From positions 558,001 through 622,000 of the forward strand of contig JBLDXI010000020.1 of assembly GCA_047495785.1 (NCBI GenBank): a stretch of DNA of 64,000 bases, given 5' to 3'. Source of the DNA: Lepidodermella squamata (Eukaryota; Animalia; Gastrotricha). The position numbers and the translations under genes are program-made. The notes beneath the pieces were generated by a model that was not told the origin of the DNA, searched no databases, and saw nothing but the letters and a program-made list of their open reading frames with translations. This document shows, piece by piece, positions 16,950 to 29,256 of the stretch. Within the stretch, counting starts at the first letter, position 1, and every line of letters starts with the position of its first letter.

Positions 16950-17844
16950 TCGACCGTGTATCTTCGTGAGCCCGGCTATGGCGCCAGCAGTTCAACGCCT
17001 CTAAAAGTAAATCGCTCGCTTTCGGGCGGCAGCCACCAGCCCTGCATTTGTCGCTCAACGGCTCCGCTATACCTCACGTCGAAGTGTTGCGCGTCTTAGG
17101 CATTCACCTTGACGCGAAGCTCTCTTGGAAGCCCCACATAGACCCCACCAATTCGAGTTATTTGTGGCGCTCATCCGCTCGCTGATGCTCAACCACTGCG
17201 ACATCGCCTTGGCTGGGTTGACGTGGAACAAAAACACGCCATCCACCTGGCCACCTTCATATGGAAGTGCCTTAACAAGCAAGCACCGGCTGCAATGCAA
17301 GCGCTTTTTTGTCTGAACCCGCCTCCCCGATACGAGGTTCGAAATTCCGAACCCATGTTCAAGCCGAAATGCGACTCAAAACGAGAAATGCTTAGTCTGA
17401 GTTACAGAGGTCCCGAACTGTGGAATCAACTGCCTATTGAGGCACGGCAGGCCGAGTCAGCTGACATATGCCGTTCAATTGCTCACGCTTTTTTCTACAA
17501 CAAAAATGCCTCTAGTTTAGCACTTTAATAAATTGATTGCACTCTATTTTTTTACTGTTGTGAAGCTATTATGAGCTGCTACTGCCTTTATGAAGTTGTT
17601 GAGATTTTGTTTTAATATTATCTTTATTATTATTACACACTATGTACTACTGGTCCAAATTGTTGACTGATCACTGCTACATATTAAAACGATGAATGGT
17701 CCAAACCTTTGTTTCGTCTCACTGTGCTCACTTTTCCTGTCCTAAATCTGAACCTGTCCTGAAATTATCTGTTACTTTTTCCTTCAAACATTGTCAAGCT
17801 GCCCTCTCTTGGGTGTCATAGCTTCTAAATAAATAAATAAATAA
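16950..17844 (+). mobile_element. 5'-truncated LINE (CR1/L2-like) with 3' UTR stem-loop and (TAAA)n tail
   Basis: LRVLGIHLDAKLSWKPHID, LFVALIRS..HCDIA, SLSYRGPELWNQLP..RQAES (post-RT C-terminus, frameshifted); AAGCT-GCCC..GGGT..AGCTT stem-loop followed by TAAA repeats at ~17826-17844. Confidence 0.85.
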
Positions 17845-18499: not shown

Positions 18500-18897
18500 C
18501 TAGCCCCCATCGACTAAAAATAAAGTTTCGATTGGCTATCTTTGCCTTTTCAGGTTCTAATGGTTCGAAGGCGGTCTTTGAGTAACAACCTTTCTTTCGT
18601 GGGGATCGCTCATCTTGCGCCCTCGAGGAAAGCGCGAGGAAGCATTGCCCAGTAAACAATGCCAAGGGGCAGCTTTCCTTGAGCTGCTTGATACTGCCTG
18701 GTAAAATTGCGGACTCATTTAATGGCGTGTTCAGTAAGCCTCATTAGCTCAACTACGCAACTGCTGATTGGAGCTAACATGCGGAGGGACGAATATTTAT
18801 CGATATCCAACGATGAAGTATTGGCTATTATCTGGCTCATATCTGACTGTGCCTCGCGCCTGCGAGCTTTCAGGCCGATATCTTCATTTTCTTTCAA
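18500..18897 (-). mobile_element. Possible decayed BEL/Pao pol fragment
   Basis: LDIDKYSSLRML....V..M....YW....AFLE with in-frame stops resembles the BEL/Pao 'IDIERYSS..KL.RV...V.RF...YW..Q..F.E' linker; weak. Confidence 0.3.
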
Positions 18898-19066
18898 ATG
18901 ATAATGAAAAATACAGCCAGGAAATCAAGTAAAAAAATTGTTCACAGCTTTCCCATAATTTATTTGCAAACGACAATAAATAATAACCATTCCAAATATT
19001 AGCAGTTCACAGATTGCAAACAAATTTCAGCAAATCGAAGTCATATTTTTCTCCTCACGGAACAAG

Positions 19067-22053
19067 CTACACTGGATGAAGTTGCGCTTGAGAAAATGGA
19101 ATCGACAATGCAGTTAATCGCCCTTGATTATGACTAATGCGCAAAATATTGTGGTCGTCAGTTTGACCGGAACCAGGCTGGGCAGTTTTTGCGGCCCGAT
19201 AGTTGATTGTTTCGGCACCACAGATAAGTCCGAAAACAGATTGGACAGACTTGACATATTTGCGAACCTAGCAATTATTACTTTGACATAATAAAAGTTA
19301 TTTCTTTCAATAATTTACCGATTCTGCTAGATGAGGTTGAAAAGTGTTCAGATCGAAGGGATCGATAAAAGACTCGAGCGCATGGATTATATCGATACAA
19401 GAGGAAGCAAATTGCTGATTTCGCCGATGGTCCCCAATCAACAGCGCCGACAGCAATTGAAAATCAAAAAGATGCTGAATTGCATGATCCTGCGAGACAA
19501 TCGATTCACTGATTTCGCCAGAATCTGACGCAGATCCTAGCGATCTGGCTAGAGAAATGAATTCATTGTAAACTTGAATCAATTTCGTGAATATGACTGC
19601 ATGCAGATTGTTCCTGAGAAAAAAACAAGAAGTCGTAATGTCTCACATAAAGACTAGGTGTAAGTTACTGTTTCAGAAGGAAGGCGGGGGATGACGCTGA
19701 GAGCCGGCATAGCGAACATAGGAAGCCATAAACATTCAAAGAGGGCTGTTGCGGAAGCAGTATCTTGCTCGTTATCTTTTGCCCTCCATCGCCTTCCTCT
19801 TCGATATCCACGCTCATCCATGTCATTTCATGCGCCGAACTCGTGGAGCTTTCAAGTCTCTTCAAGGTGTTTTCCAAATTTTTCTTGAAACTCTCGTCAA
19901 TTTTAACTTTCATGTAGTTCTCCATAGCAAAACTGAGATAAAAACATGTGAAATCATTTAAATACGTAACTGCAAAACTCACTGAAACGATTCAACGCTA
20001 ATTGTGCTTATTTGATTGCGGCAATTGGACCAAAACACAGGGTCAGACATCAAGGATTTAAGAGGAAGCATGGGCTTCCCTGAAACGGAGAAATTCGGGC
20101 TACTTATCCAATCTTCGACGTAGTTGAACAAGAATGTCAACGCAAAGCAAAATGAAGACAAATTCAGAAACCTAATGAGAATGGAGTTTAAAGTTTTCTT
20201 CAAGACTTGTGATATCAAGGTAGCTTACTTTTCAGGACTGGCGTTTGAAATTTTGTCGGCTTCAAGCTGAGCTTTGCACAAATCTATCAGTCCGTTTCCA
20301 AAGGCGGACGCTTCTTGTCGCATCTTAGTCAGCCCATTCTCACGAGCGTCGAGAGGAAGCCCCGTAGCAATAAATTCGCGACAAATTGCTAATAAAGAAT
20401 CCATAGCAGTCATTGCAGCGCTAAGCGCCAACGCGTTTTGTTGGCCAGCAAAATGGCCTACTACAAATAAATCACTCGCATTTCGGCCACCTTGATTCGA
20501 GTCCAGTCTCGACTGCTTCGAGGAACTACCAAAAGCCATTGCTTTCACAGCAGACCACATAGCAGCAGGTGAATCTTTGGCATCGCTGGCTAACAAGTTC
20601 AGCAAGTCTTTCTTAACAATATCCAGATGATTTCGGACAGCAGCTTCAAATCGCATGACAACAGCGTCGGTTAAAAATCCGCTCCAGATTTCCCCAACCG
20701 ATGGAACGTGATTTTGACAGCAGCAAGCGCTTAGCACTGAGCTGATTTCTTCACACAGCTTTTGCAAAGCTTCGAGATCGGGAACTTTTTCCAACATTTT
20801 AGGAATTTCGACAGCTAAATATTGCTTGGCTGTTTGCAACCACTCAGCAAGGCGATCATATACAAAAGCTGGCTCAAGCGCCTCGATTTTATCGAGTTGA
20901 CATGACTGAGTGAGGTGGCGACTGATTTTGCCGAGTTGAGCGTGAATACTTTGAGGAAGCGTGAATCGCACGAATTCTTTTTCAAATGTCAGAGCAGGCG
21001 GGCATATTTTGGACGCGCGATCCTCGAATTCGCCGAGAATCGCCGAACGGTGGTCGATGAACAGATTAGTTGCCAGAATCGCAGTAGATAAATAAGAATG
21101 AATCGACTCGGCGACTGCATTGGGCGAAGAATTTTTCGTTACCACCGCCTGCAAAGCCTCGTACCGGCAATTCAAAAAACTTTCATAACTTTGCCGAGGC
21201 GACAAGTAATCGATAGCAATATAGGCCGCTAACCAATTTACAGATTTCGACATCAACTCTGCGGTGAAATTTCCGTTAAATTTCAGAGGAACAGTCAGCG
21301 ATCCCAAGTTATTTCGACAGGCTGACGAAAGGGATGCCCGGCATCTAGAAAGCCGTGACTGAACTTGAGTCGATGCAACCAATGAACCAGAATTTGTAAG
21401 TTGCAAATGAGCGCAAATGTCACTGGCTAGTAGATAAAGCAACGCCCCATCCACTGGCTGAGAAGCATCAATACTGTTGTGGATCTGTGAACATTTATTC
21501 AACAAATAAAAAAGAATTGAAATGGGTTGTCAAACGAACCTCCTCTGGCATTATCAATAATAAGCGTGTGTATGTTTCATTTGAAATTGCTCCAGTTTGG
21601 TCTCTGATAATAGTTTCGAATTAGCAATTCCGAAAATATCGGTCTGTAGCTTACATTTGAGCATTGGAGTCATTACTGAGAGATTTAGAAACATCGCCTA
21701 GACGGAGCTTTAAAACTCCAACTTCACTCAGTATTTGTTTAGAAGTTTGCGAAAGCTTAGCAATCAAATCGGCTGAATCAATCAGGTCTCGATAGCGTTC
21801 GCTGTTCAAAGAAGATGTTGTAAACCCACTAACAGTCATGCAATGAATGATTTTACCCGACAATTCCACGCAGGTAATCCTTTTTTCGTTCAATATCGAA
21901 TCGCAGCTTTTCTTCAACTTTCTTAGCTTCATCGAGGGAGTTCTGAACGAAAATAGTCTCAACTTCGCCACTTATAGTCGGCGAAGGCAGCGGGCTTGAA
22001 AATGTTGCGCCCAAAGGAGGTTTGACCGCCCTGTAGGCCGAAACTACCGACAT
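19067..22053 (-). CDS. COG1: Conserved oligomeric Golgi complex subunit 1, multi-exon
   Basis: Vps51-type N-terminus IERKKDYLRGIVG|ERYRDLIDSAD; AIQHLFDFQLL..LESFIDPFDLNTFQPHL; final exon SVFGLICG..HNIL; stop TAG 19067-19069. Confidence 0.9.
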
Positions 22054-22140
22054 GTTAACAATTGAACAACTAGAAATACAATTTTGATTTGATGAGCCGA
22101 ATTTAATAAACTATGCAAAAACAATACAAAAAGCAAAATG

Positions 22141-23212
22141 TCACACATCCATCGGAGCGATTTGATCATTTCTTTCTGATTCTATAGGAGGCTGAGGGAG
22201 AATGGTGGCCAATAGGTTATCATTTCCCAACGGATGATCGATGGCAGGCTGGGTCAAAAAAGAGAAACATTTCTCAAATATTTCACGAAACTCAGGGCTG
22301 ACAAGAAGAGTTATCTTTGCTATTCTGACTCGCCAGTTTTTGCTCACCGGGTCTTGAACAATACCGAAAGCTTGTTGGCTAAGACCTGCCAGCGTATAGT
22401 CACCCCCACGCAGGGATGGCGAGACGAAGAAAGTGCCCTTCACCGCGACGCAGTGAAGACCATGCAGATCGGCTCGCATATCGAACGCGTCTCGGTTTTC
22501 AGTGTTAGGATTCAAAATAAGCTTTAGGGAGGAGATAATTTGCACCAATCGTTGATAAACAGGCTCAGCATCACTTATGTGCTCCTCCCAACTGAAACTC
22601 TTGTCTTCAGTCGCGGCATAAAAATCAAATTTTGCATCCGGTAAGAAATGTTCCGGGGCGAAAACGCCATTAGGCTCGGAAACACTGCAGCCAGCTAGAG
22701 GTAGTAGCAACTTTGACCACCATTCCACGAACTGAACTGCCATTTGGGGCAAAAACTCCGGAATTTGCGGCTTATCGATCGTACTATCTTCACCATTTGA
22801 TACGACATCCGTCGGCTCTTCAACTATTTCTTCTATTATCGGTTCGGTTCTTTGTTGATAGCTGCAACCCCATTGCTGTAGAATTTTGCTAACCAATTCA
22901 ATTTTAGTCGTGTTGAGTGCAACATTTTCGCGCGAGTATTGCATCAGGTATGAAAATAAAACATGTTTCGTAAACCGTTGGCGAGAGAGCAGCTGATGAA
23001 CATCTTCGCTCCAGTCCAGAATGGCCGATATGACTTCATCTAAAAATTGACTTCAGACAAGTTCACATGATATAACACGCCTACTCACCATCAATCGGTT
23101 TTATCTCAATTTTTCCGCCAGTAACGGTTTTCGCCAGCGCTCTTAGCTCACTCGGCGACAAACACTTCAGCAAGTTTTTCACATGAGATACTAAAGCTCC
23201 AGTAATAGGCAT
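22141..23212 (-). CDS. C3orf38: C3orf38 (DUF4518)-like protein, 2 exons
   Basis: LLKCLSPSELRALAKTVT..|EVISAILDWSEDVHQLLSRQRFTKHVLFSYL, QFVEWW, FAPEHFLPDA, LILNPN, HGLHCVAVKGT, QAFGIVQDP..NWRVR. Confidence 0.8.
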
Positions 23213-23321
23213 CACACGTAAACCATCAAAATTTCTAAATAGAAAAAATATCGGACTTCATTCGAGCTGGATTCGTTTGCGATACTTCTTTAACGGAAAG
23301 ATCCTATGGCAATGATGATGA

Positions 23322-23761
23322 TCAATTTTCAAAATGTCCTAAAATCTTAATCAAAGATCGATGCTTCGTATTCATAGAGTTGAATGTTAACGAAGCACCG
23401 CGCGAAAAGTATGGTACTGAATCTCTAGTGTAATATAAAGCTGCTCGAGAGGCAGCAAAAGCAGCTGAAAAAAGAATGAGGAAAATGCATATTTTTGTAA
23501 ATTGCAAACTTACGATTATTCGAAAACCGTGTGATACATGGTCCGAGCTTGCTTATCAGCTCATAGTAGCACAAATCCAATCTGAGTAGAATCCTACAGT
23601 TTCCGATTTCCGATAATGAGCGTCGATCAGCGTTCTGTTTCTCATAATAACGCACTAAGAAAGAAAAATGGCGAAGTTAATCCACACCGTTTTCATTTTT
23701 AATATTTAACGCCGATTTTTTCATTCAACGTTTACTCACATGGAAAGAGCCTGATCATCAT
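23322..23761 (-). CDS. Unannotated 3-exon ORF, 101 aa, unknown function
   Basis: Exons 23761-23740, 23654-23514 and 23464-23322 joined by GTGAGT..TTTCTTAG (85 nt) and GTAAGT..TTTTCAG (49 nt) introns give 306 nt, open from ATG to TGA. Confidence 0.55.
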
Positions 23762-23898
23762 TGCTTAATAACACCATCACAAGCCATAAATTTAGTTGAG
23801 ATATATTTTTAAAGTTTCTTGTGGATATGGCCGAATAAGGAATGAATGAATGAAACTAAAACGTTCTTCTCACACAATTGCACGCAACCGTTTCTGTT

Positions 23899-26781
23899 TC
23901 AGAGAATGGCGAACAGCTTTTTCAATTCTATCATGAGTTCCCAGTCGGCGCGCTGCATATCGTCGCGGAACCATTCTTTGACCGCGTCGATAGATTCGCG
24001 AGTAACTTTCGACACCAACATGTCCTTCTCGTCAAAATGACGGCCGTACATTTTTGGTCCTCCTTCGGTACCAGACACCGGCTCAATTTTTATACAAACT
24101 TCCAGGGGCGATCGAGCGGAAGGCACTTGCTTATGATTTGCTTCAATTGACGTAACGCGGCCCAGTTCTACGAACGGACGATCAGTCGAGGCCGTGCAAA
24201 TTGGGGTGCCCTCGACAAGCCGGCCTGACTCGACACGCACACCCATGACAATAGGATCTCGGGAGTTGAAAATAAACTCTGGAAGAATTTTCAGCTTAAC
24301 CGGGAAAACGGCGACGTTCTTTAACTCCGCTTGTTTCCGCTTCTTATGCTCGTCACGGTACTGACCAAATTTATCGGTCAAATGGTAAATGATGTCGGCT
24401 TCGAAAATTCGCACACCCAAGGAATCGGCGAGTTGGCGAGCGTCGGCTTCGACTCGCACATCAAAGGCTAGGATAACAGCAAACTGAGGGTCACGCTCCA
24501 GCATAGCAGAGCAGCGCATGACATCGCGACGGTGCACCGGTCCGACTGCGATATCAGCATATGGCACTTTCTCCTGACGCAAATAAGTCAACAAAGCCTC
24601 AAGAGCGCCAAGGGTGCTAGCCTGAACCGACACACCGGTATCGGCTTTTTTAAGCTGCAGTTCGCCTAAAGCAGCGTCCAAGTTGCCCTGCATCTCCCGG
24701 CGGCATTCTTCGAGTTCATCCGGGTGACGGAGGATGCCAAGTGGGAGACCGGCCAAAGCGCGCTCAGCCGCGTCTCCTCGAAGCACCAGTCGCAAGGCGG
24801 TAGCACCTTTAACGCGGTGGTGACGTGAATAGCGTGAAGATTTAACACGCAACTCGCGCATAGGCTGAGGGGTGAGCAATTCTCGAATGACGGCTTCCAC
24901 AGCACCGTCAACGGTCGGTACCAATACCGAATTTCCGACTCGCAAACGTCCATTAACAAGTAATACGTCCATGACCGGACCAAGGCCAGGCACGGATTTG
25001 ACCTCCATGATAGAGCATTGAGTCTCGTTCGAAAAGCGAAGGCGTTTCGAAAGTGTTGGTAAAACGCGGCAGAGGCGAACAAGTTGCGACACAATAGTTC
25101 CCAGACCGTCTCCGGTGACAGCAGATGTAGGAACGCACGGTACGTAGTCTTCCGTCAGTTGCTGATCGGTAAGAGTGTTGTACACGCGGGCGTTGAGCGA
25201 TGCCTCAGCTGCCAGCTGCACAATAACTTGATTGCAGCGATCTTTGAACTCCGACTGAACAGCGGCGTTTTGCGAATTGATCGACTTCATGATATCGGTG
25301 CGCGAGCCGGTCGTCTTCCAGCCGTAAAGACGATCCACCTTGTTGAGCGCGATTATGAATGGCACGTTGCGTTTTCGAATGATCTTCAAAGATTCAATAG
25401 TCTGTGGTTCGAGGCCGTGCATCAGATCAACGACCAAAATAGCGACGTCGCACAAGCTAGATCCTCGCATACGGAGGTTAGAGAAAGACTCGTGTCCGGG
25501 TGTGTCAATGAACATAATGCCTGGAAGTTGGCCGAGCTGAGCTTCAGCGGCGCTTTTCACTGCCTGGGCGGATTGGGCGTTGGCGAATCCTAAGCGGAGC
25601 TGTTCACGCAGCTGTTCGCCTGCCATCTCACCGAGGGCTTCGATCGGTACGTTAGTTCCGCCGATTTGCTGAGTGATACCACCAGCTTCACCGGACTGAA
25701 CGTTTGAACGGCGAAGCTTATCCAACAAGCTGGTTTTACCAGTATCGACGTGACCTAGGACGCAAACGATGGCGGCTCGGTAAACAGTTTTATCTGGATC
25801 ACTTTCTAAGCGTTTGGCTTCTGCGCGCTTTCGACGGGCACCGATGCGGTCGGAAGCTGGTATTGCGGCATCTTCTGGGCTCGATAGTCCACTGTCCGTG
25901 TCAGAATCCTTCATCGGGTCATCCAATTCAGCGTCCGCCGCTGCTTTTTGAGCAGCTTGCGCTTGCTGACTAGCAGCGGTCTTTTTATTATTAGCGTCAT
26001 TGTTTTCAGCCTCGGCAGGTTCTTCCTCATCGGTCGAAACGTCCCAGGTTTCCGGAAGCGAGCCCTCGGATTTGTCATCTTTGACTTCCTCCGCTTCGGG
26101 AGATTTGTCGGCCGCTTTCGCATCGGCTTTTGGCTTTTTTCGAAATTCCTTTTTCGGTTTTTCTGTGGGCGCCTGGCCAGCAGCTGTAGCCTGGCCAAGC
26201 ACTTGCTCGCGCTCCTTAAGCATCTGCTCAAAACGTTCTTTGTCGCGTTTTTGTTTTTCAGTTAAGACCAGTCCTTTGGCTTTCTTCTCCGCCAACTTCG
26301 CTTTTTCTTTCTCCTTCTTTAAACGCTTTTTTTCCTCTGCCTCTTGGAGAGCCTTTTCTCGTGCAATCCGCGCTTCTTCCGCTTTTCGCTCCTTTTCTTC
26401 GGCTTCGCGTTGCAGGCGTTCGTTCTCCGCTGCGATGCGAGCCAACTCCTCACGCATGATGCGAGCGCGCATTTCTGCAGCAGTCTCTTTCTTTTCTTTG
26501 CCTTTTTCCTTTTCTTTCTCTTTCGCTTTCTTCTTCTTATCTTTTTTCTTTTTAGCAGCGGCAGACGCGTCGGTACCACCAGCAACATTTTCTTCGCCAC
26601 TGTCGTCACCATCGTCATCATTGACTGCGACGAGTAATAAATCGTGAAAAATAAGTACCTCAAAATTGTAATTTCACGGCATACCATTCAACGCGGCAAT
26701 CTTTGATGTGGCATCGCTGCTCTTCTCGTTGTCAGCCGGAGCCGGAGTCGTTCCGTTTGCGACTGTTGCCTCGCTTGACAT
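23899..26781 (-). CDS. EIF5B: Eukaryotic translation initiation factor 5B (one 60-nt intron, 26625-26684)
   Basis: Charged N-terminus; GHVDTGKT, GEAGGITQQIG, DTPGHESFSNLR.RGSSLCD, NKVD; QASTLGALEAL; FNSRDPIVMGV; MYGRHFDEKD. Confidence 0.97.
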
Positions 26782-26917
26782 GACAGGCAAATATACTTTA
26801 AAATCCTAATCCAATGAAGAAATGATCATGAATAAGGAGTTGCGTTGCCATTGTAGCGTTTATGAAAATCGAAACAACTTGTTTATTACCAAAATTAGCT
26901 CAACACTTATCAGGCCA

Positions 26918-27724
26918 CTATCCCGATGTTTGCAGTGCTTCTGTTAGAATCGGCCGAACAGCTGCCGAAGTTGCAATCAAACAAGTCAAAACTTGCGAGT
27001 GCTTCTGAGAAAATGCCGCGCAGGCGGCACTACTAAATTTCTCATCGTTCGACCTGTGCCACCACATAGCAGTGAATTGACCCAAATTAGGCATAACGGT
27101 ACCAGCAACTAAAACCGCAGCGTTCGACATTTCAGAGGCGCCTGGATCCACAAGTAACTTCGAAGAATCAGCTGAAATTGAGCAAATGCTTCCAACTACC
27201 AAGTCACGAAGAGGTACCCCTCGAGCCATCAAAGCGACACTTCCAGCATTCACGCATGAGACAATTAACTGCATGAGCGCCAATTCCTCGCACAAATTCG
27301 CCGAATCTAAACTGGATACAGATTCGATCGGCAACTCGACGACAAAATTCAAGTCAAATGCAGTTCCAGCCCATCCAGTAGGTGGTGTCGTGAGAGTTGG
27401 CAAGAGAGCTGTATGAATCGATTTTTCAATAATTTGTTTCTGCCACCATTTGGGGGTTTCATTTTCTCGAGCAGTAAGTTTGATACACAACGGGGAATTC
27501 GATGTTGAGGTTACTTGGGGCCGGGGCCCATCGACTTCGCAATAAACTTTAAGAGAGCCGCCGCATTCAGATCCGAGACTGCGCTCAACGACACATGACG
27601 CTTGGGATGAAAACAGCTGCTGAGAATCATCATCAATGTTTTGTCTAAAGGCTATCACTGTAATAGGACTGTGTTGGTACTCGCTCCTCCCATCATAGCG
27701 CTTCCCCGAGGGTACAGGCTTCAT
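26918..27724 (-). CDS. EXOSC6: Exosome complex RNase PH-like subunit, most like MTR3/EXOSC6 (intronless, divergent)
   Basis: KVYCEVDGPR, CVNAGSVALMARGVPLRDLVVG, LLVDP, MPNLGQF, PILTEAL. Confidence 0.72.
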   Translation of the reverse strand: MKPVPSGKRYDGRSEYQHSPITVIAFRQNIDDDSQQLFSSQASCVVERSLGSECGGSLKVYCEVDGPRPQVTSTSNSPLCIKLTARENETPKWWQKQIIEKSIHTALLPTLTTPPTGWAGTAFDLNFVVELPIESVSSLDSANLCEELALMQLIVSCVNAGSVALMARGVPLRDLVVGSICSISADSSKLLVDPGASEMSNAAVLVAGTVMPNLGQFTAMWWHRSNDEKFSSAACAAFSQKHSQVLTCLIATSAAVRPILTEALQTSG

Positions 27725-29256
27725 TGTATAATATCTTCAAATGAGAAAATCTTCAACTGAAAGAAAATATTGTTCAATTATGAGTCTTATAGATGGCGAC
27801 AGATAAAATCTAAAACAATTTAAAGCAAGTATTACAGGAGGATTGCTGGCATCTGGCATAATAAAAATACTTCGGTATGTATGATTACACTTGGAAGCTC
27901 AATTTCAAAGCTCGGAACTACTGAAACGGACTGAACAAACCACAATTTGCCCGTCGGTACCCGTGGAATGCCTGGGTAAACTGTGAACGTTCGATTTCGG
28001 ACTTGAACTCATAATAAATAATAAATTCAGAAAAGTTTAGGCCTAGTTTACTAGCTACTAAAAATGCCCCTATCGCCGGATACTCAAGATATTGCGAACT
28101 GTTTCGCCATGGCTCAGGACTATAATTAACATCCAGCAATATTGCATTTTTACTATGACGGGGACATGCTTGAAATAGGACAAAACCCTACATTGAACGA
28201 AAGCCAACCATATGCCAATATTGGATATTGGAATAAGAGATGAGATAGAGTACACATGAAGGTGTAATTAGCACCTCATACGCAAAGAAAAGCGTTCCTT
28301 CGCCTGAGAATTGAGAATTGGCCGTGGTATAACCTGTTAAGCATTAGGCACAAACGACACCAACGTCACCAAGAAAATTGTGACAAAGAATTTAACAATG
28401 TAAAAGCTATCGTGGCGAAGGCAGCGTCATGCAGAAAATACTATCTTCTCTCGTATGGTACCATGCCTAAAGCGTTGTTTCGGGATTACATCACATGCAC
28501 AACACTCCCACTACCACCGGCTTCAAAAAACAAATACCGCCAAATTTCATTTCATTTCCATCGTTAATTTCAATATATTGACAAAGACTGAACAAAATGT
28601 GTATTTACATATAAAATTTTATACAGCGAAACGGAAATATTGGCTTTGTCTCCAATCCACGTGACGTAGTAGAGTTTCTTTATCTCATCGAAAACAAATA
28701 GCTTGTTGGCTATCAAATCGGAACTGTAGGCCAATGAAGCCAAGTGACAAATGCTAATGCCAAGTACGGTGATGCTAGCGAAGCAATCAGCGAATACTTT
28801 CAAAGCCACCTACCTGCTTTGAGTTACAGCAATTTGCGTTGAAATACAAAACGTTGGGTGTTATGTTTGAAATTTCTTTCGGTTGGATTCATCAGAATGC
28901 CCAACACTGAGAAACAGCCTATCATGTATCATATAACTTGAGATACTCCTCAATCTGGTTGTTTTATTAAATTTCCTTTCATTTGTTCATATTTTGCCTG
29001 TTTTATTGTCATAATTGTTGACAGTAATGTAGCAGTGTTTGATTAGCTTGAATGTAAATAACGTCATCGGCTTTTGACGCCAGGCTGTCAAAGTGATTTC
29101 AAAGTGATAAACCTCCGGGAGATCAATGCTCAATCTCGACATTGAAGAACTTGTACATTCCATCTTTGTAATGGCGTTAGCTTTGCTAAACTTTGTCTTT
29201 ATCTTACCTTTTATGGTGTAGATCGTTTTCAAAGAAATATTTTTATTGTGATAAAA

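Follow-up and report, generated by a model that had tools for sequence, protein, structure and literature searches.

Does a run of closely packed, co-oriented genes in a gastrotrich genome form an operon, transcribed as one precursor and resolved into separate messages by the addition of a spliced leader (SL)? The genes in question lie on the minus strand of a stretch of 64,000 nucleotides (nt) from Lepidodermella squamata (contig JBLDXI010000020.1, positions 558,001 to 622,000 of the forward strand; hereafter the window), and that strand was read over window positions 18800-28200. A preliminary description of the window had proposed five co-oriented genes, EXOSC6, eIF5B, an orphan open reading frame (ORF), C3orf38 and COG1, with stop-to-ATG gaps of 136, 137, 109 and 87 nt that carry poly(A) signals and intron-type acceptors. 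The gap lengths, the AG positions (26807-6, 23236-5 and 22071-0) and the hexamers AATAAA (26887-82) and ATTAAA (22107-02) were all confirmed on the minus strand, and so were four of the genes, in the order EXOSC6-like, eIF5B, C3orf38 and COG1; the fifth, the orphan ORF, is made up of the 3' untranslated region (UTR) of eIF5B and the leader exon and intron of C3orf38. The cluster, of four unrelated housekeeping genes, is real, conserved and operon-like, and we give an even chance to the reading that it is transcribed jointly, as one four-gene unit or as two pairs, and resolved by leader addition.

The same four genes, in identical order and orientation, are found on a 13.5-kb metagenome contig from ENA (k141_635693 of ERZ27333047; here L020). 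It carries the eIF5B (P0001) closest to that of the window in the protein collection, at 81% identity with the next best at 57% or less. Coding DNA of the window and of this relative is 67-84% identical over the aligned segments and ~69% across eIF5B, and the spacers are not alignable. Between the real genes, the spacers measure 136 nt (EXOSC6-like/eIF5B), 686 nt (eIF5B/C3orf38) and 87 nt (C3orf38/COG1) in the window and 40, 277 and 134 nt in L020; the first and the last are short enough in both species to exclude a promoter, whereas the middle one is not too short to hold one in either. In particular, AATAAA and the TAA stop codon overlap at the 40-nt EXOSC6-eIF5B gap of L020, and 24 nt further on lies a TAG acceptor, 11 nt from the eIF5B ATG; with both a poly(A) signal and an acceptor in 40 nt, there is therefore no space for a promoter. 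The other genes of L020 (a glutaminase, an ankyrin, a tetraspanin and a member of a large family) are not in the 64-kb window, and the best matches of the glutaminase, the tetraspanin and the large-family member are on other contigs of this genome, although these are gene families and their orthology is uncertain. The flanks differ while the four genes stay together; thus the block has been kept and its surroundings have not. Judged from the two sequences, conservation of the layout in a distant relative, down to the 40-nt gap, argues for linked expression.

Joint transcription has one serious competitor, namely that these are independent units in a compact genome, each with its own promoter inside the 3' part or the UTR of its upstream neighbour, which we regard as possible, at somewhat less than an even chance. 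The order would then be kept since overlapping promoters and UTRs make breakpoints harmful, and the acceptors would be used by 5' UTR introns or to add a leader to monocistronic precursor messenger RNAs (pre-mRNAs). Independent promoters are hard to place in L020, where the 40-nt gap would push that of eIF5B into the coding region, and the persistence of the four-gene block between flanks that both differ also speaks for linkage.

The start codons provide a second line of evidence. With an acceptor weight matrix derived from 14 internal introns, taken from both species, a YAG acceptor was found 9-44 nt before the ATG at all eight gene starts (four here and four in the relative), with scores of 5.0-10.3. 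Among 50-nt stretches of non-coding DNA of the window, 24% reach a score of at least 4 and 12% a score of at least 6; the presence of acceptors at eight of eight gene starts is far beyond chance. The acceptor is TAG at seven of the eight gene starts as against four of the 14 internal sites (Fisher p=0.012), a bias unlike that of internal introns which counts against independent units. The TAG before eIF5B is an in-frame stop, and the eIF5B ATG is therefore fixed at 26781. In L020, TAG acceptors lie 17 and 28 nt before the COG1 ATG, and the context of the C3orf38 acceptor (TATTTAG/AA.TTTT, with the slash at the splice junction) is conserved at 13 of 14 positions. No donor partner was found for any of the ATG-proximal acceptors other than that of C3orf38. 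Poly(A) signals and acceptors are present in every gap of both species; 3' end formation upstream of the acceptor is observed as a tail at 23677, between eIF5B and C3orf38, and the other two gaps have hexamers only.

RNA evidence was drawn from three runs (X1, X2 and X3), all as assembled contigs aligned to the window. X1 is complementary DNA (cDNA), with amplification adaptors and with introns skipped, and is labelled as a different organism while being 95-99% identical to the window; X3 is RNA, and X2 is DNA by its appearance. The introns within the coding sequences of eIF5B and C3orf38 (Table 1) are each confirmed by an X1 joint. On the plus strand, an X3 contig over 23677-23850 that adjoins the contig of the eIF5B coding sequence terminates in a run of 21 T with no template in the window. 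This places the poly(A) site of the eIF5B mRNA at 23677, with ATTAAA (23703-23698) 21 nt before it, and puts the orphan ATG (23761) and the first orphan exon within the eIF5B 3' UTR. X1 lacks 4 nt of this UTR at window position 23840.

The remainder of the orphan ORF belongs to C3orf38. An X1 contig joins its second exon directly to the C3orf38 coding exon (23514 to 23234, at a depth of 29), so that the AG at 23236-5 is a cis acceptor and the third orphan exon, which lies in the 279-nt intron, is skipped. The preliminary description had taken this AG for an unpaired trans-splice acceptor and had named splicing to a local donor as an observation that would count against it; it is cis-spliced to the donor at 23513. 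The five-gene operon as first proposed, with the orphan as a cistron and a leader added at 26806, 23235 and 22070, is correspondingly very hard to credit: its gaps and AGs are as described and the orphan frame is open, with three exons, 101 codons and GT-AG borders, but the first exon lies upstream of the observed eIF5B poly(A) site, the second is part of the C3orf38 message and the acceptor at 23235 is used in cis. Furthermore, no homologue of the orphan ORF was found in the 277-nt spacer of the relative (tblastn E of at least 2), and its only Pfam match is sub-threshold and a chance one, with no significant family. The orphan ORF is not a gene, and the cluster therefore has four genes. A repeat or transposon origin of the eIF5B-C3orf38 spacer was rejected, as the spacer is single-copy in the genome, and no inverted repeats were found around the 279-nt intron.

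The non-coding leader exon of C3orf38 holds short upstream ORFs only, and its contig ends at a cDNA-adaptor junction at 23616. At most ~60 nt separate this exon from the eIF5B poly(A) site at 23677, and between them lies a strong TAG acceptor (23655-23656), the predicted leader-addition site for C3orf38. The same region has features that could suit a promoter. A TTATTAT box lies ~30 nt upstream of the contig end at 23616, and the spacer of L020 contains a TATATATAT run. The best ungapped match between the two spacers, which are otherwise unalignable, is the 17-mer ACTTTAAAAATATATCT; its distance from the eIF5B stop is 84-100 nt in the window and 90-106 nt in the relative, and it may act as an element of the 3' UTR or as a TATA-like element in a promoter of C3orf38. 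An internal transcription start for C3orf38 is thus possible on the strength of these motifs. An A/T-rich 17-mer conserved within a spacer of promoter size in both species, the added run in the relative, the cis-spliced leader exon and the position of the contig end ~30 nt after the TTATTAT box all count in favour of independent units.

RNA also spans one of the short gaps. An X1 contig (26311-27239) from which the eIF5B intron has been removed continues unbroken across the 136-nt gap into the 3' part of the EXOSC6-like gene. Such a molecule favours joint transcription. It would also suit stable mRNAs of two or more cistrons that need no trans-splicing, with downstream ORFs reached by re-initiation or internal entry, as in some insect dicistronic genes; we consider this last reading improbable, as eIF5B and C3orf38 are separated by an observed poly(A) tail, poly(A) signals and acceptors recur in all gaps of the two species, and a contig over two genes does not prove one transcript. 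The single polycistronic pre-mRNA of the preliminary description is neither shown nor excluded by this one bridging contig at the EXOSC6-eIF5B gap. Of the operon model as a whole, the layout stood and was joined by its conservation, and the orphan cistron and the unpaired C3orf38 acceptor fell.

The contigs were also examined for a shared non-genomic 5' leader at the AGs, the check that had been suggested for the model. Apart from allelic variants in X2, the loose ends were adaptors (23172, 23616 and 26340), the poly(A) tail and an end of 30 letters at 27812. The last was rejected as a leader: it is single-copy local sequence (27930-27901) and is read as a fold-back chimera. The three adaptor junctions were rejected as unreliable 5' ends, as two of them show the adaptor in an unexpected orientation and one is mispriming of the polymerase chain reaction (PCR) primer on GCAGAG. 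X1 has three strand-switch fold-back chimeras in all (27812/27930, 23310/23416 and 23424/23531), with arms ~106-118 nt apart.

Several of these observations weigh against joint transcription resolved by leader addition. The assembled contigs of the three runs, from which short branches can be lost, showed no non-genomic leader at 26805, 23654, 23234, 22069 or 27756, and contigs pass the acceptors at 27757 and 26806 unspliced (X1 27481-27871 and 26311-27239, respectively), two points that also favour independent units. The sole readable 5' junction, that of C3orf38, is an ordinary cis intron, and the adaptor junction at 23616 together with the TTATTAT box could mark a start of its own for this gene. 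The bridging contig could stem from overlapping transcripts, pre-mRNA or contaminating DNA, and is weakened by low-depth contigs that also cover the 279-nt C3orf38 intron. The absence of a leader from assembled contigs, which cannot exclude one, is nevertheless weak evidence because a 30-letter branch would probably be pruned where an unspliced path exists, as at 26806 and 27757.

What we infer for joint transcription, leader addition and the start site is as follows. Transcription would begin near 27932, some 200 nt ahead of the first ATG, and would run through all four genes or, alternatively, the unit would consist of the two tight pairs, EXOSC6-eIF5B and C3orf38-COG1. Each upstream message would be cleaved and polyadenylated, freeing the downstream message, to which a spliced leader would then be added at a TAG acceptor located a few tens of nt farther downstream. 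In the case of C3orf38, the non-coding exon (at most 23654 to 23514) would carry the leader or a local start; this exon is then spliced in cis to the acceptor that lies 22 nt ahead of the ATG. A more specific version, a hybrid gastrotrich operon in which the leader is added ~22 nt past the poly(A) site onto the non-coding exon and this exon is cis-spliced to the second, conserved TAG, is conceivable and we would rate it as rather unlikely. If it were true, ATG-proximal TAG acceptors could serve cis- or trans-splicing, depending on where the RNA starts.

The layout can be compared with known systems. The operons of tunicates (Ciona, Oikopleura) and the SL1-type operons of Caenorhabditis elegans have tiny or absent spacers, a poly(A) signal at or overlapping the upstream stop codon, an acceptor nearby and housekeeping genes. 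The 40-nt EXOSC6-eIF5B gap of the relative has exactly that layout, the differences being that leader addition and the precursor are inferred for this cluster and that its acceptors prefer TAG. In the SL2-type operons of C. elegans, spacers of ~100 nt contain a poly(A) signal, a U-rich stretch and an acceptor, and hybrid operons have internal promoters. The cluster resembles them in its spacers of ~100 nt with these three elements, and the longer spacer before C3orf38, with possible internal promoter activity, recalls the hybrid operons; it differs in that the poly(A) site is 22-23 nt before the next acceptor as compared with ~100 nt, and in that no sign of a second, operon-specific leader was seen. 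An ordinary 5' UTR intron describes the C3orf38 acceptor, 22 nt before the ATG and joined to a GTAAGT donor across 279 nt, but leaves the other three ATG-proximal acceptors unexplained.

The literature searched yielded no account of operons or trans-splicing in gastrotrichs. If confirmed, the locus would bring a further phylum into the scattered set of animals in which operons are resolved by spliced leaders, and would provide a case conserved over a deep divergence that bears on whether selection maintains such operons once formed. The locus also carries two warnings: an acceptor close to the ATG is here no proof of trans-splicing, one of them being the end of a plain 5' UTR intron, and a neat spliced ORF between two genes proved to be UTR.

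Table 1. Features of the cluster in the window and of the corresponding genes in the relative (L020).
Feature	Position	Strand	Remarks
CAG acceptor	27757-27758	-	score 10.3; 32 nt before EXOSC6-like ATG
TCAGTC initiator-like motif	27929-27934 (A at 27932)	-	possible transcription start of the cluster
EXOSC6-like gene	26918-27724	-	single exon, 268 amino acids; ATG 27724, stop 26918
AATAAA	26882-26887	-	predicted poly(A) signal of EXOSC6-like gene
TAG acceptor	26806-26807	-	score 5.6; candidate trans-splice site, 24 nt before eIF5B ATG
eIF5B coding sequence	23899-26781	-	exon 1 26685-26781, intron 26625-26684, exon 2 23899-26624
eIF5B 3' UTR	23677-23898	-	ATTAAA 23698-23703, poly(A) site 23677; holds orphan exon 1 (23740-23761)
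Conserved 17-mer	23799-23815	-	16 of 17 identical; best ungapped inter-species spacer match, shuffle p ~0.01
TAG acceptor	23655-23656	-	score 7.7; 22-23 nt past eIF5B poly(A) site; exon start 23654
C3orf38 non-coding leader exon (orphan exon 2)	23514-23616, 5' end possibly up to 23654	-	X1 contig
C3orf38 5' UTR intron	23235-23513	-	GTAAGT...TTTAG, 279 nt; X1 joint 23234/23514, depth 29
C3orf38/DUF4518 coding sequence	22141-23212	-	exon 23089-23212, intron 23040-23088, exon 22141-23039
ATTAAA	22102-22107	-	predicted poly(A) signal of C3orf38
TAG acceptor	22070-22071	-	score 5.0; candidate trans-splice site, 16 nt before COG1 ATG
COG1-like gene	19067-22053	-	8 exons; ATG 22053, stop 19067
AATAAA after COG1	18959-18964	-	predicted; end of the cluster
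EXOSC6-like, relative	L020:4091-4876		protein identity to window 40%
eIF5B, relative	L020		protein identity to window 72-81%
DUF4518, relative	L020:8250-9089		protein identity to window 31%
COG1, relative	L020 ORFs		protein identity to window 34-64%

Exons were modelled by an ORF-preserving GT-AG search; database searches were run exon by exon, and the joined models were used in local scripts to align the two species. The assignment of eIF5B is certain, with matches to the Pfam families GTP_EFTU, IF-2 and GTP_EFTU_D4 and 55-57% identity to insect eIF5B. C3orf38 is a DUF4518 protein (Pfam DUF4518, E=2.5e-23); a word-based protein search using the DUF4518 exon returned no matches. The product of the first gene gave no match in a Pfam search and no record in an exact-protein look-up. 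A two-species profile found the MTR3 chain of a PDB entry (8pel_F, E=4e-8), with RRP46 weaker, and the gene encodes an RNase-PH-like exosome subunit, like MTR3/EXOSC6. The name COG1 rests on the assignment in the preliminary description and a weak match of exon 1 to the Vps51/EXO84/COG1 N-terminal family (E=0.099 here, 4.4e-5 in the relative).

In X2, a second, divergent allele was seen in the lysine/glutamate-rich low-complexity part of eIF5B, with several single-nucleotide polymorphism (SNP) bubbles (window 26492-26531 and 25576-26227); eIF5B is heterozygous in the animal or animals that were sequenced. Downstream of COG1, ~2.5 kb that include a fragment resembling a long interspersed nuclear element (LINE) precede the next gene. 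The ORF fragments there resemble the C-terminus of a LINE reverse transcriptase (...LSWKPHI...; window 17048-17528, plus strand) and show where the cluster ends.

Upstream of the first gene, the X1 contig 27481-27871 and others past 27900 indicate RNA well beyond the EXOSC6-like ATG. The candidate start motif TCAGTC is found a single time ahead of the first gene in the window and in the relative (L020:3845, within a shared 13-mer), and in none of the gaps of either species, which favours joint transcription. One X1 fold-back chimera turns at 27928-30, on this motif (which also reads as an acceptor-like TTCAG), ~206 nt upstream of the first ATG.

An Rfam scan of the window found nothing. Searched genome-wide, the Rfam SL1 model gave three equal, weak, full-length matches (26.7 bits), which were rejected as spurious: they are a 29-nt tandem satellite (L004, G000:C29:3415414-3418513). 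In the intergenic spacer of the ribosomal DNA (rDNA; L007:2018-2120 and 2741-2859, on G000:C62), a 5S rRNA gene lies on the strand opposite 18S/28S. Beside it is a multi-copy unit ending in ...CACATTTCTCTCTCTGAG (...CTCTGAG), followed by GTTAGT and a stem-loop. The unit, of which 59 or more copies or variants were found genome-wide, resembles a gene for a leader RNA that lacks an Sm site, and is a candidate only. The 5S gene is preceded, at 30 nt, by a 26-nt element (GTCGCCAATGACCAYGTGCATGTGGT) that recurs 525 nt upstream, before a separate unit (L007:2161-2186 and 2686-2711), and may be a shared upstream promoter element of small RNA genes.

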